The notes: generated from the sequence alone by a model not told the origin. Counted from the first letter of the stretch, positions 34,001-56,491 are shown. The stretch is DNA of 64,000 bases from Bugula neritina (GCA_964035545.1 OZ037770.1:5280729-5344728); one strand, 5' to 3'. Translations and numbers: made by a program.

Positions 34001-37000
34001 TATATATTATATTACTGCTAGTATATATTATATTACTGCTAGTATATATTATATTACTACTAGTAAATATTATATTACTGCTAGTATATATTATATTACT
34101 GCTAGTATATATTATATTACTGCTAGTATATATTATATTACTGCTAGTATATATTATATTACTGCTAGTATATATTATATTACTGCTAGTATATATTATA
34201 TTACTGTCAGTATATATTATATTACTGCTATAGTATATATTATATTACTGCTAGCATATATTATATTACTGCTATAGTATATATTATATCACTGCTAGTA
34301 TATATTATATTACTGCTAGTATATATTATATTACTGCTAGTATATATTATATTACTGCTAGTATATATTATATCACTGCTAGTATATATTATATTACTGC
34401 TAGTATATATTATATTACTACTAGTATATATTATATTACTGCTAGTATATATTATATCACTGCTAGTATATATTATATTACTGCTAGTAAATATTATATT
34501 ACTGCTAGTATATATTATATTACTGCTATAGTATATATTATATTACTGCTAGTATATATTATATTACTGCTATAGTATATGTTATATTACTGCTATAGTA
34601 TATATTATATTACTGCTAGTATATATTATATTACTGCTAGTATATATTATATTACTGTCAGTATATATTATATTACTGCTAGTATATATTATATTACTGC
34701 TAGTATATATTATATTACTGTCAGTATATATTATATTACTGCTAGTATATATTATATTACTGCTAGTATATATTATATTGCTGCAAGTATATATTATATC
34801 ACTGCTAGTATATATTATATTACTGTCAGTATATATTATATTACTGCTATAGTATATATTATATTACTGCTAGTATATATTATATTACTACTAGTATATA
34901 TTATATTACTACTATAGTATATGTTATATTACTGCTAGTATATATTATATTACTGCTAGTATATATTATATTACTACTAGTATATATTATATTACTGCTA
35001 GTATATATTATATTACTGCTAGTATATATTATATTACTGCTAGTATATATTATATTACTGCTAGTATATATTATATTACTGTCAGTATATATTATATTAC
35101 TGCTAGTATATATTATATTACTGCTAGTATATATTATATTGCTGCAAGTATATATTATATTACTGCTAGTATATATTATATTACTGTCAGTATATATTAT
35201 ATTACTGCTATAGTATATATTATCTTACTGCTAGTATATATTATATTACTGCTAGTATATATTATATTACTGTCAGTATATATTATATTACTGCTAGTAT
35301 ATATTATATCACTGCTAGTATATATTATATTACTACTAGTATATATTATATTACTGCTAGTATATATTATATTACTGCTATAGTATATATTATATTACTG
35401 CTAGTATATATTATATTACTGCTAGTATATATTATATTACTGTCAGTATATATTATATTACTGCTATAGTATATATTATCTTACTGCTAGTATATATTAT
35501 ATTACTGCTAGTATATATTATATTACTGCTAGTATATATTATATTACTGCTAGTATATATTATAATACTGTCAGTATATATTATATTACTGCTAGTATAT
35601 ATTATATTACTGCTAGTATATATTATATCACTGTCAGTATATATTATATTACTGCTAGTATATATTATAATACTGCTAGTATATATTATATTACTGCTAG
35701 TATATATTATATTACTGCTATAGTATATATTATATTACTGCCAGTATATATTATATTACTACTAGTATATATTATATTACTGCTAGTATATATTATATTA
35801 CTACTAGTATATATTATATCACTGCTATAGTATATATTATATTACTGCTAGTATATATTATATCACTGCTAGTATATATTATATTACTACTAGTATATAT
35901 TATATTACTGCTAGTATATATTATATTACTGCTATAGTATATATTATATTACTGCTAGTATATATTATATTACTGTCAGTATATATTATATTACTGCTAG
36001 TATATATTATATCACTGCTAGTATATATTATATTACTGCTAGTATATATTATATTACTGCTAGTATATATTATATTACTGCTAGTATATATTATATCACT
36101 GCTAGTATATATTATATTACTGCTAGTATATATTATATTACTGCTAGTATATTTTATATTACTGCTAGTATATATTATATTACTGCTAGTATATATTATA
36201 TTACTGTCAGTATATATTATATTACTGCTAGTATATATTATATTACTGCTAGTATATATTATATTACTACTATAGTATATATTATATTACTGCTATAGTA
36301 TATATTATATTACTGCTAGTATATATTATATTACTGCTAGTATATATTATATTACTACTATAGTATATATTATATTACTGCTAGTATATATTATATTACT
36401 GCTATAGTATATATTACATTACTGCTAGTATATATTATATTACTGCTAGTATATATTATATTACTGCTAGTATATATTATATTACTGTCAGTATATATTA
36501 TATTACTGCTATAGTATATATTATATTACTGCTAGTATATATTATATTACTGTCAGTATATATTATATTACTGCTAGTATATATTATATTACTGCTAGTA
36601 TATATTATATTACTGCTAGTATATATTATATCACTGCTAGTAAATATTATATCACTGCTGGTATATATTATATTACTGCTAGTATATATTATATTACTGC
36701 TAGTATATATTATATCACTGTCAGTATATATTATATTACTGCTAGTATATATTATAATACTACTAGTATATAGTATATTACTGCTAGTATATATTATATC
36801 ACTGCTAGTATATATTATATTACTGCTAGTAAATATTATATTACTGCTAGTATATATTATATTACTGCTATAGTATATATTATATTACTGCTAGTATATA
36901 TTATATTACTGCTAGTATATATTATATTACTGCTAGTATATATTATATTACTGCTAGTATATATTATATTACTGCTAGTATATATTATATCACTGCTAGT

Positions 37001-40000
37001 ATATATTATATTACTGCTAGTATATATTATATTACTGCTAGTATATATTATATTACTACTAGTATATATTATATTACTGCTAGTATATATTATATTACTA
37101 CTAGTATATATTATATCACTGCTAGTATATATTATATTACTGTCAGTATATATTATATTACTGCTAGTATATATTATATCACTGCTAGTATATATTATAT
37201 TACTGCTAGTATATATTATATTACTGCTAGTATATATTATATCACTGCTAGTATATATTATATTACTGCTAGTATATATTATATTACTGCTAGTATATAT
37301 TATATTACTGCTAGTATATATTATATTACTACTAGTATATATTATATTACTGCTAGTATATATTATATCACTGCTAGTATATATTATATTACTGCTAGTA
37401 AATATTATATTACTGCTAGTATATATTATATTACTGCTATAGTATATATTATATTACTGCTAGTATATATTATATTACTGCTAGTATATATTATATTACT
37501 GCTAGTATATATTATATTACTGCTAGTATATATTATATTACTGCTAGTATATATTATATCACTGCTAGTATATATTATATTACTGCTAGTATATATTATA
37601 TCACTGCTAGTATATATTATATTACTGCTAGTATATATTATATTACTGCTAGTATATATTATATTACTACTAGTATATATTATATTACTGTCAGTATATA
37701 TTATATTACTGCTAGTATATATTATATTACTGTCAGTATATATTATATTACTGCTAGTATATATTATATTACTGCTATAGTATATATTATATTACTGCTA
37801 GTATATATTATATCACTGCTAGTAAATATTATATTACTGCTAGTATATATTATATTACTGCTAGTATATATTATATTACTACTAGTATATATTATATTAC
37901 TGCTAGTATATATTATATTACTACTAGTATATATTATATTACTGCTAGTATATATTATATTACTGCTAAAATATATTATATTACTGCTAGTATATATTAT
38001 ATTACTGCTAGTATATATTATATTACTGTCAGTATATATTATATTACTGCTAGTATATATTATATTACTGCTAGTATATATTATATTGCTGCAAGTATAT
38101 ATTATATTACTGCTAGTATATATTATATTACTGTCAGTATATATTATATTACTGCTATAGTATATATTATCTTACTGCTAGTATATATTATATTACTGCT
38201 AGTATATATTATATTACTGTCAGTATATATTATATTACTGCTAGTATATATTATATCACTGCTAGTATATATTATATTACTACTAGTATATATTATATTA
38301 CTGCTAGTATATATTATATTACTGTCAGTATATATTATATTACTGCTAGTATATATTATATTACTGCTAGTATATATTATATTACTGCTAGTATATATTA
38401 TATTACTGCTATAGTATATATTATATTACTGCTAGTATATATTATATTACTGCTAGTATATATTATATTACTGTCAGTATATATTATATTACTGCTATAG
38501 TATATATTATCTTACTGCTAGTATATATTATATTACTGCTAGTATATATTATATTACTGCTAGTATATATTATATTACTGCTAGTATATATTATAATACT
38601 GTCAGTATATATTATATTACTGCTAGTATATATTATATCACTGCTAGTATATATTATATCACTGTCAGTATATATTATATTACTGCTAGTATATATTATA
38701 ATACTGCTAGTATATATTATATTACTGCTAGTATATATTATATTACTGCTATAGTATATATTATATTACTGCCAGTATATATTATATTACTACTAGTATA
38801 TATTATATTACTGCTAGTATATATTATATTACTACTAGTATATATTATATCACTGCTATAGTATATATTATATTACTGCTAGTATATATTATATCACTGC
38901 TAGTATATATTATATTACTACTAGTATATATTATATTACTGCTAGTATATATTATATTACTGCTATAGTATATATTATATTACTGCTAGTATATATTATA
39001 TTACTGTCAGTATATATTATATTACTGCTAGTATATATTATATCACTGCTAGTATATATTATATTACTGCAAGTATATATTATATTACTGCTAGAGTATA
39101 TTATATTACTGCTATAGTATATGTTATATTACTGCTATAGTATATATTATATTACTGCTAGTATATATTATATTACTGTCAGTATATATTATATTACTGC
39201 TAGTATATATTATATTACTGCTAGTATATATTATATTACTGCTAGTATATATTATATTACTGTCAGTATATATTATATTACTGCTAGTATATATTATATT
39301 ACTGCTAGTATATATTATATTACTGCTAGTATATATTATATTACTGCTATAGTATATGTTATATTACTGCTATAGTATATATTATATTACTGCTAGTATA
39401 TATTATATTACTGCTATAGTATATGTTATATTACTGCTATAGTATATATTATATCACTGCTAGTATATATTATATTACTGCTAGTATATATTATATTACT
39501 GCTAGTATATATTATATTACTGTCAGTATATATTATATTACTGCTAGTATATATTATATTACTACTAGTATATATTATATTACTGCTAGTATATATTATA
39601 TTACTACTAGTATATATTATATTACTGCTAGTATATATTATATTACTGCTATAGTATATGTTATATTACTGCTATAGTATATATTATATCACTGCTAGTA
39701 TATATTATATCACTGCTAGTATATATTATATTACTGCTAGTATATATTATATTACTGTCAGTATATATTATATTACTGCTATAGTATATATTATATTACT
39801 ACTAGTATATATTATATTACTGCTAGTATATATTATATTACTGCTAGTATATATTATATCACTGCTATAGTATATGTTATATTACTGCTATAGTATATTA
39901 TATTACTGCTAGTATATATTATATTACTGCTATAGTATATGTTATATTACTGCTATAGTATATGTTATATTACTGCTATAGTATATATTATATTACTGCT

Positions 40001-43000
40001 AGTATATATTATATTACTGCTATAGTATATGTTATATTACTGCTATAGTATATATTATATTACTGCTAGTATATATTATATTACTGCTAGTATATATTAT
40101 ATTACTGCTAGTATATATTATATTACTGTCAGTATATATTATATTACTGTCAGTATATATTATATTACTGCTAGTATATATTATATCACTGCTAGTATAT
40201 ATTATATTACTGCTAGTATATATTATATTACTGCTATAGTATATATTATATTACTGCTAGTATATATTATATTACTGCTAGTATATATTATATTACTGCT
40301 AGTATATATTAGATTACTGCTAGTATATATTATATCACTGCTAGTATATATTATATTACTGCTAGTATATATTATATTACTACTAGTATATATTATATTA
40401 CTGCTAGTATATATTATATTACTGCTATAGTATATGTTATATTACTGCTATAGTATATATTATATCACTGCTATAGTATATGTTATATTACTGCTATAGT
40501 ATATATTATATTACTGCTAGTATATATTATATTACTGCTATAGTATATGTTATATTACTGCTATAGTATATGTTATATTACTGCTATAGTATATATTATA
40601 TTACTGCTAGTATATATTATATTACTGCTATAGTATATGTTATATTACTGCTATAGTATATATTATATCACTGCTAGTATATATTATATCACTGCTAGTA
40701 TATATTATATTACTGCTAGTATATATTATATTACTGCTAGTATATATTATATTACTGTCAGTATATATTATATTACTGCTAGTATATATTATATTACTGC
40801 TAGTATATATTATATTACTGCTAGTATATATTATATTACTACTAGTATATATTATATTACTGCTATAGTATATATTATATTACTGCTAGTATGTATTATA
40901 TTACTGCTAGTATATATTATATTACTGCTAGTATATATTATAATACTGCTAGTATATATTATATTACTGCTAGTATATATTATATCACTGCTAGTATATA
41001 TTATATCACTGCTAGTATATATTATATTACTGTCAGTATATATTATATTACTGCTAGTATATATTATATTACTGCTAGTATATATTATATTACTGCTAGT
41101 ATATATTATATTACTGCTATAGTATATGTTATATTACTGCTATAGTATATATTATATCACTGCTAGTATGTATTATATTACTGCTAGTATATATTATATT
41201 ACTGCTATAGTATATATTATATTACTGCTATAGTATATATTATATTACTGTCAGTATATATTATATTACTGCTAGTATATATTATATCACTGCTAGTATA
41301 TATTATATTACTGCTAGTATATATTATATTACTGCTAGTATATATTATATCACTGCTAGTATATATTATATTACTGCTAGTATATATTATATTACTGCTA
41401 GTATATATTATATTACTACTAGTATATATTATATTACTGCTAGTATATATTATATCACTGCTAGTATATTTTATATTACTGCTAGTAAATATTATATTAC
41501 TGCTAGTATATATTATATTACTGCTATAGTATATATTATATTACTGCTAGTATATATTATATTACTGCTAGTATATATTATATTACTGCTAGTATATATT
41601 ATATTACTGCTAGTATATATTATATTACTGCTAGTATATATTATATCACTGCTAGTATATATTATATTACTGCTAGTATATATTATATTACTGCTAGTAT
41701 ATATTATATTACTACTAGTATATATTATATTACTGCTAGTATATATTATATCACTGCTAGTATATATTATATTACTGCTAGTATATATTATATTACTGCT
41801 AGTATATATTATATTTCTGTCAGTATATATTATATTACTGCTAGTATATATTATATTACTGCTAGTATATATTATATTACTGCTAGTATATATTATATTA
41901 CTGTCAGTATATATTATATTACTGCTATAGTATATATTATATCACTGCTAGTATATATTATATTACTGCTAGTATATATTATATTACTGGTAGTATATAT
42001 TATATTACTGCTAGTATATATTACATTACTGCTAGTATATATTATATTACTGCTAGTATATATTATATTACTGTCAGTATATATTATATTACTGCTAGTA
42101 TATATTATATTACTGCTAGTATATATTGTATTACTGCTATAGTATATATTATATTACTGCTAGTATATATTATATTACTGCTAGTATATATTATATTACT
42201 GTCAGTATATATTATATTACTGCTAGTTTATATTATATTACTGCTATAGTATATATTATATTACTGCTAGTATATATTATATTACTGCTAGTATATATTA
42301 TATCACTGCTAGTATATATTATATCACTGCTAGTATATATCATATCACTGCTAGTATATATTATATCACTGCTAGTATATATTATATTACTGTTAGTATA
42401 TATTATATTACTGTCAGTATATATTATATTACTGCTAGTATATATTATATTACTGCTAGTATATATTATATTACTGCTATAGTATATATTATATTACTGC
42501 TAGTATATATTATATTACTGCTAGTATATATTATATTACTGCTAGTATATATTATATTACTGCTAGTATATATTATATTACTACTAGTATATATTATATT
42601 ACTACTAGTATATATTATATTACTGCTAGTATATATTATATTACTGCTAGTATATATTATATTACTGCTAGTATATATTATATTACTGCTAGTATATATT
42701 ATATTACTGCTAGTATATATTATATTACTGCTAGTATATATTATATTACTGCTAGTATATATTATATTACTGCTAGTATATATTATATCACTGCTAGTAT
42801 ATATTATATTACTGTCAGTATATATTATATTACTGCTAGTATTTATTATATTACTGCTAGTATATATTATATTACTGCTAGTATATATTATATTACTGCT
42901 ATAGTATATGTTATATTACTGCTATAGTATATATTATATCACTGTCAGTATATATTATATTACTGCTAGTATATATTATATTACTGCTAGTATATATTAT

Positions 43001-45179
43001 ATTACTGTCAGTATATATTATATTACTGCTAGTATATATTATATCACTGCTAGTATATATTATATCACTGCTAGTATATATTATATTACTGTTAGTATAT
43101 ATTATATCACTGTCAGTATATATTATATTACTGCTAGTATATATTATATTACTGCTAGTATATATTATATTACTGCTAGTATATATTATATTACTGTCAG
43201 TATATATTATATTACTGCTAGTATATATTATATTACTGCTAGTATATATTATATTACTGCTATAGTATATATTATATTACTGCTAGTATATATTATATTA
43301 CTGCTAGTATATATTATATCACTGCTAGTATATATTATATTACTGCTAGTATATATTATATCACTGCTAGTATATATTATATTACTGCTAGTATATATTA
43401 TATTACTGCTAGTATATATTATATCACTGCTAGTATATATTATATTACTGCTAGTATATATTATATTACTGCTAGTATATATTATATCACTGCTAGTATA
43501 TATTATATTACTGCTAGTATATATTATATTACTGCTAGTATATATTATATTACTGCTAGTATATATTATATTACTGCTATAGTATATATTATATTACTGC
43601 TAGTATATATTATATTACTGCTAGTATATATTATATTACTGCTAGTATATATTATATTACTGCTAGTATATATTATATTACTGCTAGTATATGTTATATT
43701 ACTGCTATAGTATATATTATATTACTGCTAGTATATATTATATTACTGCCAGTATATATTATATTACTGCTAGTAAATATTATATTACTGCTAGTATATA
43801 TTATATTACTGCTAGTATATATTATATTACTGCTAGTATATATTATATTACTGCTAGTATATATTATATTACTACTAGCATATATTATATTACTGCTAGT
43901 ATATATTATATCACTGCTAGTATATATTATATTACTGCCAGTATATATTATATTACTACTAGTAAATATTATATTACTGCTAGTATATATTATATTACTG
44001 CTAGTATATATTATATTACTGCTAGTATATATTATATTACTGCTAGTATATATTATATTACTACTAGTATATATTATATCACTGCTAGTATATATTATCT
44101 TACTGCTAGTATATATTATATTACTGTCAGTATATATTATATTACTGCTAGTATATATTATATTACTGCTATAGTATATATTATATTACTGCTAGTATAT
44201 ATTATATTACTGCTAGTATATATTATATTACTGCTAGTATATATTATATTACTGCTAGTATATATTATATTACTACTAGTATATATTATATTACTACTAG
44301 TATATATTATATTACTGCTAGTATATATTATATTACTGCTAGTATATATTATATTACTGCTAGTATATATTATATTACTGCTAGTATATATTATATTACT
44401 GCTAGTATATATTATATTACTGCTAGTATATATTATATTACTGTCAGTATATATTATATTACTGCTAGTATATATTATATTACTGCTAGTATATATTATA
44501 TTACTGTCAGTATATATTGTATTACTGCTAGTATATATTATATTACTGCTATAGTATATATTATATTACTGCTAGTATATATTATATTACTGCTAGTATA
44601 TATTATATCACAGCTAGTATATATTATATCACTGCTAGTATATATTATATCACTGCTAGTATATATTATATTACTGCTAGTATATATTATATCACTGTCA
44701 GTATATATTATATTACTGCTAGTATATATTATATTACTGCTATTATATATTATATTACTGCTAGTATATATTATATTACTGCTAGTATATATTATATTAC
44801 TGCTAGTATATATTATATTACTGCTAGTATATTATAATATTATTATTCAGAAGTGCTTCCTCTGCATCATCCAGAGGTAAAGTCAGCACCAAAGTCACCC
44901 CACAAATTAGAAAGGAAATGGAAAAGTAAGTAAAATATTTCCCCTTCTTAAAACTATCTTCTCAATAATAATTTCTACTGAGATCTTACTAAATCTATAT
45001 ATTCCGTGTTATTGAGTGTTGATGGTGTTTTATAGGAGGCGATTCGAATCAACATCTTTGGCTAGACTTGTCAGCACCGGTTTAGTGTGAGTACAGTATA
45101 ATTATATGAAATAGTATTTATTGGTGTCTCTTGTTTTACATGTAAAATATGCATGAATCTTTCATTTATATTTATAGGC

Positions 45180-45218
<39 letters not shown>

Positions 45219-48200
45219 TAATATATATAATATATAATATATATAATATAATAACACATATATAACGAATATTATAATATAATAACACCTATATATAACG
45301 TATATAATATTATAATAACAGTTATATATTACGTATAAAATATAAAACATGTATATATATAACGTATATAATACAATAACATATACATAACGTATATTAT
45401 AATATAATAACACGTATATATAACGTTTATAAAACACACCATTCTGTTCAGGAAGGACATGGCTAACGAGTCTATACAGGAGGAGCCGAGTATATCAGCT
45501 CTGTCAGTTGGAAAGGCAGCTCAGAGTAAGTAACACTACAGTTAGTTAGTACTGCTTTAGTTAGTACTGCTTTAGTTAGTACTGCTTTAGTTAGCACTGC
45601 TTTAGTTAATGTTGCTTTAGTTAATACTGCTTTAGTTAATACTGCTTTAGTTAGTACTGCTTTAGTTAGTACTGCTTTAGTTAATATTGCTTTAGTTAAT
45701 ATTGCTTTAGTTAACACTGCTTTAGTTAGTACTGCTTTAGAATTGGTACTGCTTTAGTTAGTACTGCTTTAGAATTGGTACTGCTTTAATTAGTACTGCT
45801 TTAGCTAGTACTGCTTTACTTAGTGCTGCTTTAGCTAGTACTACAATATTCTTAAGAAAAAGTTATTTTATCACAGAGTAGAAGTATTGTTATATGGTTG
45901 CAATAATGAACTTGATAATTCTTTTTCATCCATTATCTCGATCTAAACAACTAATTAAATTAAAAAGTTTGTTATTGCAAATTGAATCAATACAATAATT
46001 GGAATTTTCATGCAGAAAAGATGTCTACTGGCTACACATAAAATACGATATAGAAAATAAATATTTAGATCGAAGGCTGTATTTTTAGATGAAGGGACGC
46101 CAGAAGAAGCTCAAAACAATTCAAAACAATCAATAAAACTGATTAGAAGAGATGGGAAGCCTTTTGCAATCTCCTCTGTGAGTGAAGTTCTCAGTCTATG
46201 TTTTACTTTTATACCTTTTACAGTCTACAGAACAATCTAAATCAAATTATTAGGCATATATCCAGACAGATTGCTTGTTTGCATCCATTATTAATTTCTG
46301 ATTTCTTTTCTTCCTCGTAATAACTTCAATCTAAGCATTTCAGCTACTTGTAACTACAAACCTTTTTTATGAAATTTTTATTGAGCAGCTGGAGATGATA
46401 AACCCATGAGCCTATTATGGCTCTATAAACAGCTTCGAGTCAGGGGTGAATTAGGGTAGTAGTTTTGAATTTCCAAGCTTGGAGTTGGGGGTTTAGTGGA
46501 AAACCTAATTCCAAACTCAAGAGCCCTAAATTATTGCACTTATTCACCCCTAACTCAGGGCTGCTTGTAGAACTGTTCTATTGTATCAGCAAACTAGAAA
46601 CTAACAGGGTCTAAAAAATGTAATGCGTTTCGATTAGGACTTGTACATAGAACAGTTTATTTAAATGCTATATTGTAAGCAGAACTGTTAGGTCATTGTC
46701 AGATGTGGCATTTTGGGACCTTGTTTTTGGTGCTGGGGTTAAACTTTTAATCCACTTGGAAAGAGAGACTATTGCAAACTTAAAACTTTTGAAACCCTCT
46801 AAGGTAGAACAACTCCAAAGTGTAGTGAAATTGCAAAGTACTGTATAATCCCATCTTTCCCCTAGGGGCCTTTTTCTAAATCTCGACTGAAGCCCAAGTC
46901 AATGTCAAAGTTCACCAGAAGATCCGAGGTAACCAACATGACGCCACAAAAATCTTCACATTTAGTGGCTGAAAAAGGGTGAGTTGATGTCATTGTGTGA
47001 TGTCATATTCTTTCATGTGTACAGTTTACTTTATTATAATGTCACACATTATTATGTTAAGTAATGTTGAAAATGTGCAATCTACAGTGATGATACGTTG
47101 ATAATATAGCCTAATATAATATAATATAATATAATGTAATATAATATAATATATTATAATATAATATAATATAATATAATATAATATAATATAATATAGT
47201 ATAATATAATACAATATGAAATAATATAATGTAAAATAATATAATATAATATATAATCATATTATATATGTAATATAGCATATGACATATAATATAGAAA
47301 AGTAAGATAATATGCATAAGTGTATGCAAGTATGATAGTATACCATATGTATAAAGTGTATAAAAAGTTGAAGTACCATACAACGTAGCCTATATACTAC
47401 ATATATATAAAACCTATATTTGTAACTGCCCTCCTAGTTTGCTATGAAAGTTCCATACGGGTGTATGTTTTAGTGTAGATAGTTTATTGATTTACACTGT
47501 TCACACCATTTACACCTTTTACACCGTGAAACTACAATTTTCACAAAACAAAATGATTAAAATATGATAGAATAAGAGCAAATTAAACACAGAAAAGTAC
47601 ATAAAAGAATTTGATAAATTGCTTGTTTTATAATTATTAAAATATTCAAAGTAACAGTATAAATCAACAAAGTTATAATATATAAAAGCATACCTCTTTC
47701 ACCCTTTCTAGGAGAGAGTTAGTAGTATAAAGAAAGCAACATTTTATACCGTGTGTTTGTAAAAATAGCTATAATATTATGTGAGAGTAGATGAGAATGG
47801 AACCTTGACGCTTGAGGGTTCTTACGATAATGTCCTGGCTAAATGTATTTTAACTGTTTTTGTCGGCATGTGTAAAGCTAGTGCACTCAGTTTCTTAGTC
47901 ATGGTTTTTTGAGTGCAGCCAGTGCAAAATAAAACTTGCAATGCACCGAGTGATACTAAAATGGTCTTGAAGATAAAAAAACAGTGACAAACAAGTGCTA
48001 AAGAGTACACTAAGGATGGGTGATTCATCGCTGTTGGAATATGTGACAACACAAACGCAGTGTGGCAATGTCGGTAAATGCTAAATTGCTAATTGATATA
48101 TATTATGACAGTTATGAACAAATTGGCAGCAGAGTGTCAGTAAGCAAACTAAATAAAACCAAATTTATGAAATTTTACTATTTATTATAAAGGACACTAC

Positions 48201-51200
48201 ACTCCCACCTAAAATTTCAGAAATTTTTCAGCAAAGTTTTACTCGTTATCCTTTAAATACATATGTATATATTTTTTAGTTTTCAATTAGTGTCACCAGC
48301 TTTGAGACAGGGCGGTGTAGGTACTTTTTGGAGTTCACAGGCTGGTTTCTATTACCAATTAAAATTTTGGCTGATCGGACTCTACCGTCTTTTGATTTTA
48401 TACATTCTACCACCTTTCCCATAGACCACTCATTTCTATTACCATTGTCATTCACAATAATCACTATGTTTCCGGTCTTCATTTCTCGGCCTGTTTGATT
48501 CACCCATTTCTGGCGAGATTGGAGATAGCACAAATACTCAGTGCGCCAGCGCTGCCAGAAGTTATTTGCCAGATGCTGCACAGCACGCCAGCGCTTGCGG
48601 CTGTAAATATCACTGTCGGTGAATTCAGATGGAGGTGAAAGAATGATGTCTGACTTCATAGTCAGCAGGAGATTTGGAGTGAGAGGATGATGTTCTTCAG
48701 TGACTGTGGAAAGGGGCCTCGAATTTATGATAGCCATAACCTCATACATGAGGGTTCGGAGGTTACTGGTGTCGAGTCTTCCGGCATGTTTTCTCAGAAC
48801 GTGCTGAAGTATGCTTCTAGCTGAACGGATCATCCTTTCCCAGACGCCACCCATGTGACTGGCTGCAGGCGGGTTTAGCTTAAACTCCAGGACACCTTTC
48901 TCAGTTAGTTCAGGAATAGCGCCAATGAAGTTGGTACCCTGGTCACACCAGATTTCTCTAATGGGGCCGCGAATAGCAATTACGTTGCGAATGGCATTTA
49001 TGAAGGAAGAAGTAGTCATGTCATCGAGTAGCTCGATGTGGACCGCTCGACTGGCCAAGCAAGTGACCATTAGACCATAACGTTTCAGTTCAGTGCGTCT
49101 ATCCTTGACTTGGAAGGGGCCAAAACAGTCGACTCCACAATAAGTGAAAGGGGGTGACTCTGTAACTCTTTCTGCAGGAAGTGAAGACATATTTGGAATG
49201 ATTGGCTTACCGCGATCACGACGGCAGTCCACACAATGATAGATGAGAGAGGTAACTAGCTGTCTAGCACCTATGACCCAATAACCAGCTGATCTCATTT
49301 GAGCTAGGGTCATTCCACGACCTTGATGCTTAGCCTGGTTATGGAAGTGCTGAAGAAGAAGTTGGGTAAAATGTCCGGCCTTGGGAAGGATGATTGGGTG
49401 TTTGTTTGAGAACTCAATGAATGCGCTATGATCGAGTCTACCTCCAACTCTCATGATACCCTTTGAATCAAGGAATGGGCTGAGATTGAAGATAGGGCTG
49501 CTTTGACTGATTTTCTTGCCATCTTTCAGGCATTGAGCTTCAGGAAGATGCTCCTGTTGTGCAGATTTGATGATGTATGATTCAGAGGCAGATTTTATAT
49601 CATAAGAAGTGCTTTTCATGTGCTTAGAGCGTGCTTTCTGAATGAATAGTCCTGTCACTTTGACAGCTGTCGTCCAGGAGGAAAAGCGATGGAGCAAATG
49701 ATAAAGTGTTGGATGGGTGGAGGTATCATGGGTTGAAGTAACAAGTGACTTGACCTCTTTGTCATCATTTCTAACTTGTGGGGTTGGCTGCTCAGGGATT
49801 ACTATCGGTTCATTCCAGAGAAAATCTGGTCCCGTGAACCAGTTGGATTTGTTTAGCTGATCAATGGTCAGACCTCTTGAGGCATGGTCAGCAGGGTTCT
49901 GGTCTGTTGGTACGTAAAACCAACTTTCTGGACATGACTGGTCTCTAACCTTTTGGATTCTGTTTGTGACATATACATGGAACTTCTTTGAGGTGTTTTT
50001 GAGATAGCCAAGTACAACTTGAGAATCAGTCCAAAATGTTTCAGTGACATCCATTCCAAGTTCTGACCTAATAATGCCGGATACTTGTGCTGAGGTGACT
50101 GCTGCTTGCAGTTCCATGCGGGGGATTGTGATGGGTTTGATTGGAGCTACTCGACCTTTACTCATGAGCAAGGAAACATTGACTTGGTGCTTGGCATTGA
50201 CCACTCTCAAGTAGCTGACTTCACCATAGCCATTTGTACTGGCATCGGAGAAATGATGAATTTCTGCTTTGGAGATATCACCGAAATCATGTGGTTTGTA
50301 GCATCTCTTGATGTGGATGTTGGAGAGATCGGACAGAGAAGATTTCCAGCTCTCCCACCGTAATAACAGTTCACCTTCTAGGGTTGCCTCCCATGAAGCT
50401 GAAATTCTACACATATCTTGGAGTATATTTTTACCCTTCAAAATGAATGGGGAGAGGAAGCCTAAAGGATCAAATATGGATGCAATGGTAGAGAGAACAC
50501 CTGAACGAGTGTTAGGGTTTGACTTGATGGATGAGCTGAATGTGAAAGCATCAGATTTGAGTGACCACAGAAGACCTAGAGTTCTTTCAATGGGTTGAGA
50601 ATCATCATCAGGCTCAAGAGTTTGGATGTCTTGCACATTTCTTTCAGAAGCGGGGATAGATTCGAGAACAGCAGATGAGTTAGATGAGAATTTGTGAAGA
50701 CGTAAATTGCCTTCTTGGCATATGGATATGGCGTCTTGGACCACACTAATTGCAGAGTCAGTATCAGAGAAACTCATTAAACCATCATCCACATAAAAGT
50801 TGTTTCTGATGAACGATTTAGCAAGTGTGTTTGGGTTGATGCTAGTGTCACAAAGTGACCGCAAACCGTATGTTGTGCATGCGGGGGATGACGTTGCGCC
50901 AAAGAGATGCACTTTCATTCTGTAAGGAACTATCTCTCCCTGTTCGTCATACCAAAGAAACCTGAGGAGATCTCTATGTTCAGGAAAAATCCGAAACTGA
51001 TGGAACATTCTACCAATGTCACAGGTTACTCCTACCAGGTATTTCCTGAATCTCATCAAAATACCTATCAAGCTATTCATTTGATCAGGACCCTGGAGCA
51101 GATAGTCATTGAGACACATCCCTCCCACCTTGGCGGCTCCATCAAAGACAATCCGAATTTTTCCAGGTTTCTTGGGATGGTAAACACCAAAGTGAGGGAT

Positions 51201-54200
51201 GTACCATGCGCTCTCATTGTTTTTCTGGTCATCTGGAACAAGTTCTGCCTCACCTTGTGTTATGATGTCATTCATAAATTTGTGATAGTGCTCGGAGAAA
51301 GTAGGATCAGTTAAATTTTTTTGAAGATTTTTAAATCGATTGAGTGCCATGTATTTAGATTTGTTCGGACCGGGTTGAGATTTTAGTGGAAGAGGCATAG
51401 TGATGTGACCTTCTACATCTTTATATGTTTGCTCTTTCATGAGTTTCAAGAAGTTGATGTCATCGATTGACATCTTTGAATTCTCATTTGACGGATCTGA
51501 ATCAAAGTCAGAGCTTAGGATCTTAAGGATTTTGGTTTCCAGGTTGGCATCTTCATTGTGGCTGTCTGCCTGTATCTTAAATGAGATATTTTCTCTGGTT
51601 GTGGGTTGTAAGACTGCAAGGTTTACTATCGTAAGCAAATTACGGGGGTTCTTTTGAGTATTATTTTGTGTGGTATTTCCCATGAGTAGCCAACCAAGAT
51701 CACTCAGCCTAGCAAATGGCACATTGTCACCAGCAGTAATTTCTTGCCGTGACATGAATACTTGTGGCAGATTGCCACCAATGAGGAGACCGAGAGTGAG
51801 CTGGTTGCCTTCTTTGGCAGTGATGAATTCAGAAGCAAGGTGACGTAGATGGGGCCAGTCCTGTACGGACATGGAATTAGGAATTTCATTGCGATTGAAG
51901 GGTATTTGTGACTGACTTACACAAGTTGGCAGCTTAATATACTTTTGTCTATTGTAGCCGCGGACTAACAGCCCAGTTGCAGCTTGTCTGCTGGATGTAG
52001 ACCCTTGTACATCAGTGAGGGTGCTGATACTCATGTCCGTATCATGAGTAGTGGCATTGAGTGCATTAATAGTGTCGTGAGTGATGAACGTGTGATTAGA
52101 ACCAGAGTCTAATAGAGCATAGACTAGGACTTCATGGTCAGGATTTTCTATTGATGATACATACACTGGAATGGTCCATGAGGCGAGGTTTGCTGGCCTA
52201 TTTCCGGCGCAGCTACGCGCAGTGGCTTGTGTTGGATTATTTTCGTTGTCTTGATTTATATTTGGATTATTGTGATTGGTTTTATTTTCGCTACCTTTAT
52301 TGGAAGTTGAGTTTTGAGTGGAGGACTTATTTTCGCTGCCTCGAATTTGATTGTTATGTGAAATTTTATTTGGTTGAGAGGTCTTATTTTCGCTGCCTCT
52401 ATTGTAATACTTATGGAACACAGCAAGATGTTTTTGCTTACAGTCTTTTTTAGTGCACGTCGCAGGGTGGCGACATTTATCCATTTTGTGTCCCGGCTTC
52501 GCACATGAATAACAAAGGTTGTTATTGTCAAATAATTTCTCTATGTCTGAATGAGGTAATTTTTCAAGTTTGAAACAGATGCCAGTGCCATGGTTGTTCA
52601 TGTTACACATCAAGCATGGGTACCTACGCATAGGTTTTGTGGTGTCATGTGATATGTTAGCTGTTGTAGCTTGATTTTCTGAAGCGAGAAATACTGTTGC
52701 CTGCTTTTCGGACTTGCGAGTAGGTTGACTCCGCCTATAGCTGTTATCATGGTTTCTATTTGATACGACTCTTTTGGCTATGGCTTTGTTTAGACTGTTG
52801 CTTGCTACATCAGCCTCTCTAGATAAGAACCGGACAAAATCAAATATTGATGGAAACCGATCTGTTGTTGATTCTATTTCAGTTGCCATTTTGACCCACC
52901 GATTGCCTACCGATATTGGTAACTTTGCGAGAATTTTTTCATTTTCTCTTCGATCATTAAGGCAGTTGAGTTCAGGAAGCTTGTTCATGGCGGTTTGGCA
53001 GGATTCTAGAAAATTGACTAGTTCTTCCAGTGCCTCCCCGTCATGTTCTTTGATAAGGGGCCACTGTTCCAACTGGGTCCGATATGCTTCAGTGAGTATG
53101 TGGGGTTTCCCGAATTTATCATTTAGCTTGCGTTTTGCTTCTTTAAATGCTTCTTCAGTTCCAATTTGGAATAAATTTGCTACTACTCGTTTGGCTTTAC
53201 CACCTAAATATTGTTGAAGGAGAGCTATCTTTTGGAGGGGATTGTAACTACCACTCTCAATGAGACCCTCAAATGCCACCTTCCAATCCAAATATTCGAG
53301 GGGTTCACCAAAAAATACAGTGGGCTCGGCAGGTTTTAGTTTGATTGTGTGAATAGCTTGTGCTAGTGTGTTAGCAAATGCTTGTTGATCAGAAACGGAG
53401 CTGATGTTCCATGGTGGAGTGACGTCTACAGGGCTCCTTGTAGGGTACGAAGTGGAGTCAGCTGGTGCCTGGTAGAACTGAGGGTTGGTAATAGGATGTT
53501 TAGTCTGAGTCCTAGGTGCAGGTACTGGAGGCATGATAGAAGGTTTGACTGGATTATGGGTTTCGACATGTAAATGTTTAAAGTTAGGTGCAGGTGCTGG
53601 AAGTACAATAGAGGAAGACTTGGCTGGATTATCGAGTTCGGCATGTGATTGTGTGAAGTTAGGCTGGGGTAGTGGATGAAAAAGTGAAATACTGCCTTCA
53701 TCTTCCATAGCCTCAGAAAGAACCTGTTCTTCAGCTTCAATGGCATCAAGTTTTGCTTGAATTTTGCTTTGCTCTATAGCCATTGCCAATTGTTTGGCTT
53801 GCATTTCTAGTGCATGAGTGCTTTTTGATGACTCAAGTTTCTGTTTGAGAGCTGCAGATTTTGCTTTAGCTTCCAACTGCATAGCTTTAATTTTTGAACT
53901 AGCACGGGATGATTTGGAAGCTGAGGTGAGATAGGATTGAGATTGAATTGAAATGACTGAACCTGATGGGTTACGTGGTTTAGACAGAAAAGCAGCTGAT
54001 GATGCGCCTGGTTGGTTTGATAAAGCAGTTTTAGAACGCGTTGTATAGACATGCATCAGCTCTAAGACTTGTTGCAGACAATTTTCATTATCTGCTCCTA
54101 CGCGGTCAATTTGGTTTCTGACTTTTAGATCTGGTTCAAGATCGCCACAAGCTTCGCGCAATTGTTCATAGGCCTTGATTACATTGGCCTTCTCTTCAAT

Positions 54201-56491
54201 AAGCTGCGTCTTTAAACCTTCTAAAGTCTCAAACGATATCTCTTTATGTGAGGAAAATTCCTTACTTATGAACTGATGAAACACACTGCAGTTTTTTAGT
54301 ATCTCTTTTAATTTATCTGCCAATAGTTTGATTTCAATACGTTTAGCATGAGTTGGATTGTCTTCATGTATCTCAACATGTCCTTGTGTGGGTGGAATTT
54401 CCTGTTCTAATGTCTCGTAATTTTTGGCTGACGAATTTTGGTCAAATTGAAAAGTGTCACTAATTGCAGCATTTTCTGATTGAGTATTTTGTTTATACAT
54501 GGTTGACAAAAAGAAATAGCAAAATGTGTGAGAATTTAGTGTTGAATATCTTGGCGTGAAAACACAACTCCTAATTAGTTTTTTGAAAATATCGAATTTC
54601 TGGTCAGTTGGCTTACTGTCACAAAGCGCACAATAAATTCAAAGATAGCACGCGTAACCACAGTAGGCAAGGAAAATCGTAGTGCGTTGACTGTTAAATT
54701 ATTGCTTTGACCTAGTTATTGCCCGGAATGTAAACGCAGCACGCTGTGTTGTCACTATTACAACAGCGATGTTACAGTAATAAAGAGATAGAACAAATGA
54801 AAATAAAGATGCTCACTAATAGTAATTGTGATATGTGAATGAAAAGTTATAATTAGCTTGAGAGCTATGTAAAATTTGGTAGCTATGTAGTACAAGAAGT
54901 AAATTGTGGTTAACTAGGACAATGTGTCAGTTGGGTAAAAACTTATACAGTATAGATATAATTAAACTTATCGCTCTGGAGTCTTGTTGGCTGCTGGCTC
55001 TGGCTCTTGGCTCTGGCTTTGTAGCTCTGGCTCTTGGCTGACTGGCGCTGGCTCGGTACGACTGTATAGGCTGATAGTTTGGCTATCGTTCGACTGCTGG
55101 TCAGTTTTCCCCGGAGACTGTATGCCTGATTTGGGTGAATTGTGGGTTGAGTTGTTTAACTTGGGTTTGGTGTGCTTGTGCTTATCGTAAGTGATGAATG
55201 AGAATTTACTCTGTGCATGAGGATAGAAGCATTTCACATTAGAGTATTACGTGCTGTTTTGGATTAAAGTTGTGGGAGCTTGATGTAGAGTGGAAAATCA
55301 AGGTTCAATCATTTGAGTGTAAGTAGGTTACAGTTTCGCTTGTCAGCAGCAAGTGGGAAGTTTTACTTGCTGTCTTAGGTTAAAGTTCCACTTCGTGAGA
55401 GCTAAGAGTCTAACACTTGTCAAAGGCAAGTGGGAAGAGTTTCACTGTAACTGCCCTCCTAGTTTGCTATGAAAGTTCCATACGGGTGTATGTTTTAGTG
55501 TAGATAGTTTATTGATTTACACTGTTCACACCATTTACACCTTTTACACCGTGAAACTACAATTTTCACAAAACAAAATGATTAAAATATGATAGAATAA
55601 GAGCAAATTAAACACAGAAAAGTACATAAAAGAATTTGATAAATTGCTTGTTTTATAATTATTAAAATATTCAAAGTAACAGTATAAATCAACAAAGTTA
55701 TAATATATAAAAGCATACCTCTTTCACCCTTTCTAGGAGAGAGTTAGTAGTATAAAGAAAGCAACATTTTATACCGTGTGTTTGTAAAAATAGCTATAAT
55801 ATTATGTGAGAGTAGATGAGAATGGAACCTTGACGCTTGAGGGTTCTTACGATAATGTCCTGGCTAAATGTATTTTAACTGTTTTTGTCGGCATGTGTAA
55901 AGCTAGTGCACTCAGTTTCTTAGTCATGGTTTTTTGAGTGCAGCCAGTGCAAAATAAAACTTGCAATGCACCGAGTGATACTAAAATGGTCTTGAAGATA
56001 AAAAAACAGTGACAAACAAGTGCTAAAGAGTACACTAAGGATGGGTGATTCATCGCTGTTGGAATATGTGACAACACAAACGCAGTGTGGCAATGTCGGT
56101 AAATGCTAAATTGCTAATTGATATATATTATGACAGTTATGAACAAATTGGCAGCAGAGTGTCAGTAAGCAAACTAAATAAAACCAAATTTATGAAAATT
56201 TACTATTTATTATAAAGGACACTACATATATTGATGTAGAACTGGTATATTATAATAACAACATATAATATTAAATATAATAACATGTATACCATTATAA
56301 TATAATCCAATTACTATATAATATTAACAGTACATATAATAAATAATGCAGTAATTAACCTGTACTTAATGTGATAGTAAATAACTATATTATCATAACA
56401 CATCTTCATATATGTATGTCATTTTAGGAAGAAACGACTTGGACAGACAAATAAACTTACTAATTTAACTTCTAAAGACGATATCAAGTGA
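28016..56491 (+). CDS. Orphan type I single-pass membrane protein, about 256 aa, 9 exons
   Basis: Exons 28016-28043, 28699-28838, 29394-29450, 30366-30496, 44851-44925, 45452-45525, 46089-46177, 46866-46978, 56428-56491 (TGA). All 8 introns are GT-AG and join without a stop (phases 1,0,0,2,2,1,0,2). Signal-peptide-like MDKLEWLLYVIGILLSG; TM segment IFVAIFTILSVLFASTLIVLLV. Upstream in-frame ATGs at 27947 and 27989. Confidence 0.72.
28352..28471 (-). mobile_element. SINE family A, tRNA-like head
   Basis: Reverse complement reads GAGCAGCCGTGGTCTAGGGGTTAG...GGGTTCGAGCCC (A and B boxes). Confidence 0.8.
28865..29350. repeat. (TAGTA)n pentanucleotide repeat
   Basis: About 95 units filling most of intron 2 of the orphan gene. 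Confidence 0.98.
31169..31380 (+). mobile_element. SINE family A, near full-length
   Basis: tRNA-like head GCAGCCGTGGTCTAGGGGTTAG...GGGTTTGAGC plus a ~140-bp body ending gatagtgactataaacttg; at least 4 copies in the window. Confidence 0.8.
32105..44835. repeat. 12.7-kb satellite array, 21-bp unit (about 600 copies)
   Basis: Consensus tatattactgctagtatatat; recurrent variants ctgtcag, ctactag, atcactg and a 23-bp ctgctatag form. Confidence 0.99.
45541..45842. repeat. 15-bp minisatellite
   Basis: gttagtactgcttta units starting about 15 bp after the donor at 45525. Confidence 0.95.
47113..47260. repeat. (ATAAT)n simple repeat
   Basis: Direct observation of the pentamer tract. Confidence 0.9.
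47421..48201 (-). repeat. 3' LTR
   Basis: tgtaactgcc...ggacactaca; no differences from 55446-56226 seen by eye. Confidence 0.97.
48276..54500 (-). CDS. BEL/Pao Gag-Pol polyprotein (Gag, 3 Zn knuckles, protease, RT, RNase H, integrase)
   Basis: Uninterrupted ~2074-aa ORF (first ATG 54500). Motifs: FFGEPLEYLDWK, CYSCAKPGHKMDKC, ALLDSGS, KIRIVFD, YVDD, FSDAS/WTDS/NPADHASRG, integrase VDCFG-CDQGTNF-GGVWERM, and FWQRWRTEYL...RQKW. Domain order PR-RT-RH-IN. Confidence 0.97.
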   Translation of the reverse strand: MYKQNTQSENAAISDTFQFDQNSSAKNYETLEQEIPPTQGHVEIHEDNPTHAKRIEIKLLADKLKEILKNCSVFHQFISKEFSSHKEISFETLEGLKTQLIEEKANVIKAYEQLREACGDLEPDLKVRNQIDRVGADNENCLQQVLELMHVYTTRSKTALSNQPGASSAAFLSKPRNPSGSVISIQSQSYLTSASKSSRASSKIKAMQLEAKAKSAALKQKLESSKSTHALEMQAKQLAMAIEQSKIQAKLDAIEAEEQVLSEAMEDEGSISLFHPLPQPNFTQSHAELDNPAKSSSIVLPAPAPNFKHLHVETHNPVKPSIMPPVPAPRTQTKHPITNPQFYQAPADSTSYPTRSPVDVTPPWNISSVSDQQAFANTLAQAIHTIKLKPAEPTVFFGEPLEYLDWKVAFEGLIESGSYNPLQKIALLQQYLGGKAKRVVANLFQIGTEEAFKEAKRKLNDKFGKPHILTEAYRTQLEQWPLIKEHDGEALEELVNFLESCQTAMNKLPELNCLNDRRENEKILAKLPISVGNRWVKMATEIESTTDRFPSIFDFVRFLSREADVASNSLNKAIAKRVVSNRNHDNSYRRSQPTRKSEKQATVFLASENQATTANISHDTTKPMRRYPCLMCNMNNHGTGICFKLEKLPHSDIEKLFDNNNLCYSCAKPGHKMDKCRHPATCTKKDCKQKHLAVFHKYYNRGSENKTSQPNKISHNNQIRGSENKSSTQNSTSNKGSENKTNHNNPNINQDNENNPTQATARSCAGNRPANLASWTIPVYVSSIENPDHEVLVYALLDSGSNHTFITHDTINALNATTHDTDMSISTLTDVQGSTSSRQAATGLLVRGYNRQKYIKLPTCVSQSQIPFNRNEIPNSMSVQDWPHLRHLASEFITAKEGNQLTLGLLIGGNLPQVFMSRQEITAGDNVPFARLSDLGWLLMGNTTQNNTQKNPRNLLTIVNLAVLQPTTRENISFKIQADSHNEDANLETKILKILSSDFDSDPSNENSKMSIDDINFLKLMKEQTYKDVEGHITMPLPLKSQPGPNKSKYMALNRFKNLQKNLTDPTFSEHYHKFMNDIITQGEAELVPDDQKNNESAWYIPHFGVYHPKKPGKIRIVFDGAAKVGGMCLNDYLLQGPDQMNSLIGILMRFRKYLVGVTCDIGRMFHQFRIFPEHRDLLRFLWYDEQGEIVPYRMKVHLFGATSSPACTTYGLRSLCDTSINPNTLAKSFIRNNFYVDDGLMSFSDTDSAISVVQDAISICQEGNLRLHKFSSNSSAVLESIPASERNVQDIQTLEPDDDSQPIERTLGLLWSLKSDAFTFSSSIKSNPNTRSGVLSTIASIFDPLGFLSPFILKGKNILQDMCRISASWEATLEGELLLRWESWKSSLSDLSNIHIKRCYKPHDFGDISKAEIHHFSDASTNGYGEVSYLRVVNAKHQVNVSLLMSKGRVAPIKPITIPRMELQAAVTSAQVSGIIRSELGMDVTETFWTDSQVVLGYLKNTSKKFHVYVTNRIQKVRDQSCPESWFYVPTDQNPADHASRGLTIDQLNKSNWFTGPDFLWNEPIVIPEQPTPQVRNDDKEVKSLVTSTHDTSTHPTLYHLLHRFSSWTTAVKVTGLFIQKARSKHMKSTSYDIKSASESYIIKSAQQEHLPEAQCLKDGKKISQSSPIFNLSPFLDSKGIMRVGGRLDHSAFIEFSNKHPIILPKAGHFTQLLLQHFHNQAKHQGRGMTLAQMRSAGYWVIGARQLVTSLIYHCVDCRRDRGKPIIPNMSSLPAERVTESPPFTYCGVDCFGPFQVKDRRTELKRYGLMVTCLASRAVHIELLDDMTTSSFINAIRNVIAIRGPIREIWCDQGTNFIGAIPELTEKGVLEFKLNPPAASHMGGVWERMIRSARSILQHVLRKHAGRLDTSNLRTLMYEVMAIINSRPLSTVTEEHHPLTPNLLLTMKSDIILSPPSEFTDSDIYSRKRWRAVQHLANNFWQRWRTEYLCYLQSRQKWVNQTGREMKTGNIVIIVNDNGNRNEWSMGKVVECIKSKDGRVRSAKILIGNRNQPVNSKKYLHRPVSKLVTLIEN
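55446..56226 (-). repeat. 5' LTR
   Basis: 781 bp; on the minus strand it has TATAAAA at 55773-55767 and AATAAA about 65 nt before the LTR end. Confidence 0.97.

Follow-up and report, generated by a model that had tools for sequence, protein, structure and literature searches.

A 64,000-nucleotide (nt) stretch of the Bugula neritina genome (GCA_964035545.1 OZ037770.1:5280729-5344728; hereafter the window, with positions counted from its first letter) carries on its minus strand an intact long terminal repeat (LTR) retrotransposon of the BEL/Pao superfamily. This element probably uses part of its own spliced RNA, and not a transfer RNA (tRNA), to prime minus-strand DNA synthesis, and from the comparison of related sequences a whole clade of BEL/Pao elements probably does the same. 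Self-priming independent of tRNA had been suggested in a preliminary description of the window, and it gains support here from comparative evidence, namely a conserved, co-varying duplex and intron-less genomic copies. The novelty of the predicted arrangement lies in an intron that, in the DNA, interrupts the primer sequence.

The minus-strand primer of an LTR element anneals directly after the unique 5′ region (U5), and the logic of LTR formation therefore requires a primer that anneals directly after the LTR. The 5′ LTR ends in CAGTTACA at 55446 and the next bases are GTGAAACTCTTCCCA, bearing out the earlier remark that no TGG or tRNA-type site follows it; a TGG-initiated tRNA-type site was not found within a few bases of the LTR, where GTGAAACTCTT stands instead. 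Exon 1 ends in GTGAAAGAG, up to 55719 on the minus strand, and the spliced junction (AAGAG + TTTCAC) forms 11 contiguous Watson–Crick pairs with 55445-55435. In the unspliced 5′ LTR, the longest complement to the site is the 8-mer AGTTTCAC at the acceptor, with none longer anywhere in the LTR, and the 11 pairs after splicing against 8 before it that had been described were thus both recovered by computation. By our own arithmetic, an exact 11-mer complement is expected by chance ~1.5e-4 times in ~620 nt. The end of exon 1 (55719-55727) also includes a GTGAAA identical to the primer site's first six bases; with 55551-55556 it could give the spliced junction a small local hairpin, GTGAAA-GAG-TTTCAC, in competition with the site, and this hairpin is not kept in other lineages.

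The 162-nt segment is a real intron, as judged from genomic copies of the element. The 216-Mb genome contains eight full-length copies with the leader of the window's element (family A). Seven of the eight keep the intron; their LTR pairs are 99.9-100% identical and, together with 5-bp target duplications, indicate that the family moved recently. The eighth (L022/L021) has two identical 619-bp LTRs with exactly 162 nt missing (junction GAAAGAG-TTTCAT), its own ATTAT target duplication and 99.6% identity to the other seven copies. The same precise deletion (55718-55557) recurs in family B, a composite repeat, and in two older LTRs, L023 and L025, so that four loci and one repeat family are intron-less at the exact borders, with the junction GAAAGAG-TTTCA(C/T). 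Intron-less LTR variants, sought in the genome, thus carry exactly the junction that had been predicted, one of them as a transposed full element. Far more distant lineages also have LTRs with the intron, and the eighth copy is 99.6% identical to its intron-bearing relatives; most simply, then, the intron was lost when spliced RNA was reverse-transcribed, and the splice sites at 55719/55556 are used in vivo. All relatives retain the GT..AG borders, with intron lengths from 94 to ~580 nt and a drifting intron sequence. The marks of a spliceosomal intron are all found: GT..AG, a branch-like TTAAT motif ~25 nt upstream of the acceptor, a T-rich pyrimidine tract after it, and precise absence from retro-copies.

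This arrangement was found in 12 lineages. Two are other families of this genome; those from elsewhere, gathered by protein search and contig look-ups, are two Watersipora subatra families, five from other assemblies, and one lineage each of sea star, acorn worm and fish (Table 1). Covariation between junction and site, which had been proposed as a check in related BEL families, was borne out, with complementarity kept through compensatory changes. A duplex of 10-12 bp is present in 11/11 tabulated lineages and one of 10 bp in the twelfth, Glandiceps. The unspliced LTRs offer 8-10 contiguous pairs; splicing adds 1-3 pairs in 12/12 lineages, and no unspliced LTR holds a longer complement. The exon border cuts the duplex after 6, 7 or 8 pairs, with a total length that is still 10-12. 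Exon 1 positions -1 to -3 pair in 11/11 lineages; the number of pair types is two at each of positions -2 and -3 and three at -4, and position -6 never pairs. Examples of pairs between exon 1 end and post-LTR site are AAGAG/CTCTT, TAGAG/CTCTA, ATAAG/CTTAT, TCAAG/CTTGG, AAAAG/CTTTT and ACAAG/CTTGT, and those of exon 2 are TTTCAC/GTGAAA, TTTTCAC/GTGAAAA, ATCTCAC/GTGAGAT and ATCTTAC/GTAAGAT, while TTTTTCAC also pairs with its own site.

Table 1. Spliced junctions (hyphen at the exon border) and post-LTR sequences in related lineages
Lineage	Junction	Post-LTR sequence	Duplex
Watersipora subatra family 1	ATAAG-TTTCAC	GTGAAACTTAT	
Watersipora subatra family 2	ACAAG-TTTTCAC	GTGAAAACTTGT	
Assembly L088	TCAAG-TTTCAC	GTGAAACTTGG	
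Assembly L089	AAAAG-TTTCAC	GTGAAACTTTT	
Assembly L091			10 bp
Assembly L093			10 bp
Assembly L094	AAG-TTTTTCAC	GTGAAAAACTT	
Patiria miniata (sea star)	GAG-ATCTCAC	GTGAGATCTC	
Glandiceps talaboti (acorn worm)	GAG-ATCTTAC	GTAAGATCTC	
Astyanax mexicanus (fish)	ACG-TTTTCAC	GTGAAAACGT	

Family D of the same genome has a Gag 36-38% identical to that of family A and an intron of 94-102 nt at the same place. Its exon 1 ends in TAGAG; four 5′ LTR copies are followed by GTGAAACTCTA, and one more by GTGAAACTCTAT. Relative to family A this is a compensatory A-T to T-A change, the sites CTCTA and CTCTT tracking TAGAG and AAGAG, and the rest of the family D leader is unrelated to that of family A. Donor contexts are homologous between neighbouring lineages, and the donors were therefore not picked to fit. 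When partners were swapped between lineages, 0/100000 permutations reached the observed total; the test takes no account of relatedness, but the pair types themselves vary from lineage to lineage. Conservation across 12 lineages rules out chance as an explanation. A functionless complementarity, arising by chance or by shared ancestry of short motifs, could draw on the GTGAAA/TTTCAC pair, which is common to many lineages and could be inherited, but it is contradicted by compensatory changes that affect at least six positions, fall in both halves and span four phyla, and by two permutation tests (the above and that for the second helix) that each gave 0/100000; we regard it as highly improbable.

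All lineages share an LTR that ends in ACA and an exon 2 that continues (C/T)AC-GGTG (TAC-GGTG in Glandiceps). A polyadenylation signal lies 18-50 nt downstream of this motif in every lineage, which places the intron in the repeated region (R) throughout. A CATCAGT motif is found 1-30 nt after the polyadenylation signal from bryozoans to fish, at the R/U5 border of L088, L090, L093, L094, L095, L096, L097 and L098, and has been lost from family A; the motif is a possible marker of that border or of the cleavage site.

Exon 1 also takes part, through its 5′ portion, in a second helix whose other arm is the end of U5, immediately ahead of the LTR's final 8-10 nt; here the arms are CTCTCCTAG and CTAGGAGGG. 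Distant lineages build it from unrelated sequences, such as GGTCTAA/TTAGACC (fish) or TATGACCAGG/CCTGATCATA (Watersipora family 2). The duplex energy of a lineage's own arms (mean -17.1 kcal/mol) is lower than that of cross pairs (-11.7), and 0/100000 permutations reached the observed value. Taken together, the two co-varying helices are predicted to bring the 5′ end of the spliced RNA back to U5 and the LTR-adjacent site.

The site follows the exons of the element that carries it, also where two families share a genome, which rules out a single host RNA. On this comparative evidence, a host primer is excluded by the covariation and not by the tRNA screen, which found 0 tRNA genes in the window and 1 in 507 kb of loci and thus hardly sampled the host tRNA set. 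The helices might instead be a long-range structure of the 5′ untranslated region with another role (packaging, dimerisation or a translation/packaging switch), with a host RNA as primer. Such a structure would accommodate the small tRNA sample, the 2-5 further primer-site-like motifs that lie beside hairpins in the leaders of several lineages, which resemble a repeated binding module, and the minimum-energy fold, which does not single out the first site. It is nevertheless unlikely: the perfect 10-12 nt lies exactly at the LTR border, where a primer must anneal, the later motif copies are degenerate, there is no TGG, and nothing is conserved beyond position 12. Moreover, the site varies from family to family in a single genome and from phylum to phylum while matching the element's own exons, which one host RNA cannot do.

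Self-priming could also take place on unspliced RNA, through the start of exon 2 plus the intron's terminal AG (8-10 nt) or through exon 1 across a looped-out intron, with the intron kept for expression or export. The 8-10 contiguous pairs already available in the unspliced LTR would suit such a primer, as would the small gain from splicing in deuterostome lineages (1-2 pairs), and if it is the unspliced RNA that is replicated, retention of the intron, as in 7/8 young full-length copies, is what would most simply follow. Set against this, covariation links exon 1 positions -3 to -5 to site positions 9-11 in the bryozoan lineages; every lineage pairs position -3, where the intron base never pairs. 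A canonical intron is kept exactly inside the helix in every lineage examined, across four animal phyla, and the exon border falls at differing depths (6, 7 or 8 pairs) within a constant total of 10-12. We therefore consider an unspliced primer improbable and favour a primer built by splicing.

In the predicted mechanism, the end of spliced exon 1 (3-5 nt) and the start of exon 2 (6-8 nt) would form a contiguous 10-12 nt primer on the post-LTR site. By analogy with Tf1, the element's RNase H would cut the folded-back RNA after ...CAC and before the conserved GGTGT (between 55551 and 55550); the invariance of (C/T)AC-GGTG at the predicted cut in all lineages is the sole, indirect hint of this step. 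The new 3′ end would be extended into U5, with a predicted product of ...AAGAGUUUCAC joined to DNA reading TGTAAC... The strong-stop DNA would start downstream of the junction and cover only the exon 2 part of R and U5. After transfer to an unspliced 3′ R, the intron would be copied back to yield intron-containing progeny (7/8 young copies), and a spliced 3′ R would yield intron-less progeny (1/8). Alternatively, the spliced RNA may prime in trans on an unspliced partner RNA, with the same outcome. Because the intron would be re-copied from the unspliced 3′ R or the partner RNA, most new copies would keep it and few would lose it.

Transcription is inferred from the TATA position to start ~30 nt past the box, at ~55745-55741, which puts the predicted junction ~20-30 nt into the RNA. 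An L091 contig that starts at AACTCTCTCC, near the predicted start, was rejected as evidence for it, as the contig is a circularly collapsed LTR with a 31-nt overlap. The RNA data consisted of Logan contigs only, not raw reads. Run X7 contigs lie on the exons, U5 and leader and barely on the intron, which in contig data is a hint only. Contigs that join 55719 to TTTCAC miss one 9-nt unit and diverge at 55523; these joined contigs match family B, were rejected as splicing evidence for family A, and neither support nor refute splicing.

Several observations weigh against priming by spliced RNA. Among the contigs there is no clean 55719-to-55556 joint, and the intron-less contigs of runs X1, X4 and X7 match family B, which is itself intron-less in the DNA. 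In one copy (L007/L015), exon 1 of both LTRs carries a G>T change but the site is unchanged, and the single copy L058 is degenerate, with mismatches at the primer's 3′ end. Folding of the natural intron-less copy L022 recovered the second helix, but paired the junction with a look-alike inside U5 or with the second copy of the primer-binding site rather than the first. In deuterostomes, exon 1 supplies only 3 pairs, of which the intron's terminal AG mimics two, and splicing adds only 1-2. The nearest TATA-like box of family D lies only ~41 nt before the donor, which would give a very short exon 1. Finally, a ~25-nt exon 1 would leave the primer with a ~20-nt 5′ tail, for whose handling in plus-strand transfer the model offers no account.

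Self-priming is established for Tf1 and has been proposed for other Ty3/gypsy and Ty1/copia lineages (PMC4600332, PMC6317226). After cleavage by RNase H, Tf1 takes the first 11 nt of its own RNA as primer (PMC4600332 and references therein). The element described here resembles Tf1/Tf2 of Schizosaccharomyces pombe and the Tf1/sushi group in that a tRNA site is missing, ~11 nt of its own 5′ RNA pair next to the LTR, an adjacent helix involves U5, and a proposed cut in an RNA duplex makes the primer end (PMC4600332). A site complementary to the element's own 5′ RNA, which typifies Tf1, is present in the 12 lineages described here, where it pairs over 10-12 bp with the spliced form only. The Tf1 primer, in contrast, is the first 11 nt of an unspliced transcript, whereas the sequence here is discontiguous in DNA, would be joined by removal of the R intron, and lies downstream of another paired segment. 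The likeness concerns the predicted mechanism only: the polyprotein is not that of a Ty3/gypsy chromovirus (the Tf1/sushi clade), and its proteins are those of BEL/Pao. Self-priming is also predicted for plant Tcn1 (Ty3/gypsy) and TAR/Houba/Osr-1 (Ty1/copia), which have no intron and were found by screens that need at least 10 contiguous bases in the unspliced LTR (PMC6317226). With only 8-10 contiguous bases when unspliced, most of the elements described here would be missed by such screens.

Splicing separates functional RNA pools in retroviruses, through their subgenomic RNAs. For BARE of barley, splicing status is likewise described as separating functional RNA pools of one element (PMC3735527). 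In both cases splicing removes coding or packaging sequence, unlike the situation proposed here. Viewed as a whole, neither system is known to us to build a reverse-transcription primer by splicing. In the open-access literature, we found no description of splice-built priming and none of priming in the BEL/Pao superfamily; a paper on the Pao-like element Sinbad does not discuss priming.

The element has the hallmarks of BEL/Pao: TG..CA LTR ends, a polypurine tract and a target-site duplication (Table 2). The TATA box, donor, branch-like motif, acceptor, 162-nt intron and post-LTR bases of the preliminary description are all present on the minus strand where it had placed them. The position of the AATAAA signal (55513-55508) puts the intron inside R and the last ~50 nt of the LTR in U5. 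In the polyprotein, Pfam matches were obtained to Peptidase_A17 (2e-44, residues 1334-1496), DUF1759 (1.3e-8) and DUF5641 (3.4e-23), and a match to Integrase_H2C2 (8.6e-5) fell just under the curated cut-off. A protein search returned 1933 matches, with BEL/Pao polyproteins as the nearest relatives; the best matches carry PF05380, PF03564 and PF18701; Watersipora subatra proteins are 57-59% identical. Rfam gave no family match on 54400-56300. The element thus shares with ordinary BEL/Pao members the Pao peptidase A17, a DUF1759 Gag, DUF5641, TG..CA LTRs, a polypurine tract and a short target duplication, and differs from them, usually described as tRNA-primed, in having no tRNA-type site.

Table 2. 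Features of the BEL/Pao element in the window
Feature	Coordinates	Strand	Remarks
Complete BEL/Pao LTR retrotransposon	47421-56226	-	8806 bp; AATATA on both flanks
5′ LTR	55446-56226	-	781 bp, TGTAG...GTTACA; one mismatch to 3′ LTR
TATAAAA box	55773-55767	-	direct reading of the minus strand
Second helix, 5′ arm CTCTCCTAG in exon 1	55733-55741	-	pairs with 55462-55454; co-varies across lineages
Last 5 nt of exon 1, AAGAG	55719-55723	-	pairs with 55439-55435; 5′ half of proposed self-primer
Intron in R, spliceosomal type	55557-55718	-	162 nt; GTATGC...TTAAT...T-rich...TTGTAG
First 6 nt of exon 2, TTTCAC	55551-55556	-	pairs with 55445-55440; 3′ half of proposed primer
AATAAA polyadenylation signal	55508-55513	-	equivalent AATAAA or ATTAAA in all lineages
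Second helix, 3′ arm CTAGGAGGG, near U5 end	55454-55462	-	pairs with exon 1 arm
Predicted primer-binding site GTGAAACTCTT	55435-55445	-	directly after LTR; no TGG
Long leader	54501-55434	-	several more primer-site-like motifs by small hairpins (CACTTGC...GACAAGTG)
gag-pol single reading frame	48276-54500	-	ATG at 54500; 2074 codons; no internal stops
Polypurine tract AGGTGGGAG	48202-48210	-	abuts 3′ LTR; same tract in L088, L090, L091
3′ LTR	47421-48201	-	781 bp; same intron at 47532-47693

Within the leader, the primer-site motif is repeated 2-5 times at a spacing of 18-28 nt in bryozoan and hemichordate lineages (window 55300-55445; L004, L005, L007, L022; L088:78-170; L093:745-810; L096:3439-3510), and one family A subgroup has a fresh 25-nt leader duplication that begins with the exact 11-nt site. 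A GCCAGA-rich stretch lies at ~54990-55050; such GCCAGA/GCCAAG-rich sequence is kept between families A and C (L057:1540-1620, L090:3290-3310) and partly in Watersipora. Just downstream of the element, on the plus strand, there is a 21-bp satellite of ~416 copies with 93% matches, after which come a 15-bp repeat array and an (ATAAT)n tract; these repeats were noted at 36000-44842 (the start may be earlier), 45542-45842 and 47101-47296.

Other LTR variants were noted in the host genome. Family B is a ~1.5-kb repeat with at least 13 copies (L031-L043, L047; e.g. G000:C6:10790583-10793604) that starts ~110 nt inside an intron-less LTR and continues with 900 nt of unrelated DNA ending in ...GGCACTCCATA; contigs matching it are abundant in RNA-labelled runs. 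Its lack of an intron and the unrelated sequence that follows would make it a counter-example, and it was rejected as such, being a composite repeat in which the following DNA is not a primer site. Directly beyond the predicted cut, the 9-nt unit GGTGTAAAA varies from -1 to +3 copies among close LTRs (window 55533-55550 and the same place in L006/L017, L016, L023 and L025), which fits a transfer point but is explained equally well by ordinary slippage. The recurrent C>T change at the last primer base (TTTCAT in L021/L022, L065 and L028) was likewise rejected as a strand-transfer signature, since the base lies in a CpG. In a cluster of diverged LTRs (L026, L029, L030; G000:C3:1414807-1432358), exon 1 and the donor are missing but the acceptor and most of the intron remain; the cluster may be an LTR-derived array.

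BEL/Pao is one of the three big superfamilies of LTR retrotransposons in animals, and to our knowledge its priming has hardly been studied. Beyond self-priming itself, we propose tentatively, with slightly less than even confidence, that in a large and old BEL/Pao clade spanning bryozoans, echinoderms, hemichordates and teleosts the primer exists only after splicing of the R intron, and that splicing status sets which RNA serves as primer and which as template. If true, self-priming would not be peculiar to Tf1/sushi and a few copia lineages, and its spliced form would occur in elements active in many animal genomes. It would constitute a third way of priming LTR elements, with a built-in link between the spliceosome and reverse transcription. 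An intron-split primer sequence would explain why such elements are annotated as having no primer-binding site, and spliced self-priming would explain the persistence of an intron inside the LTR. The elements would also be predicted to escape silencing by tRNA-fragment small RNAs aimed at tRNA primer sites, and would offer a concrete system in which a retroelement sorts its RNAs into messenger, primer and template.

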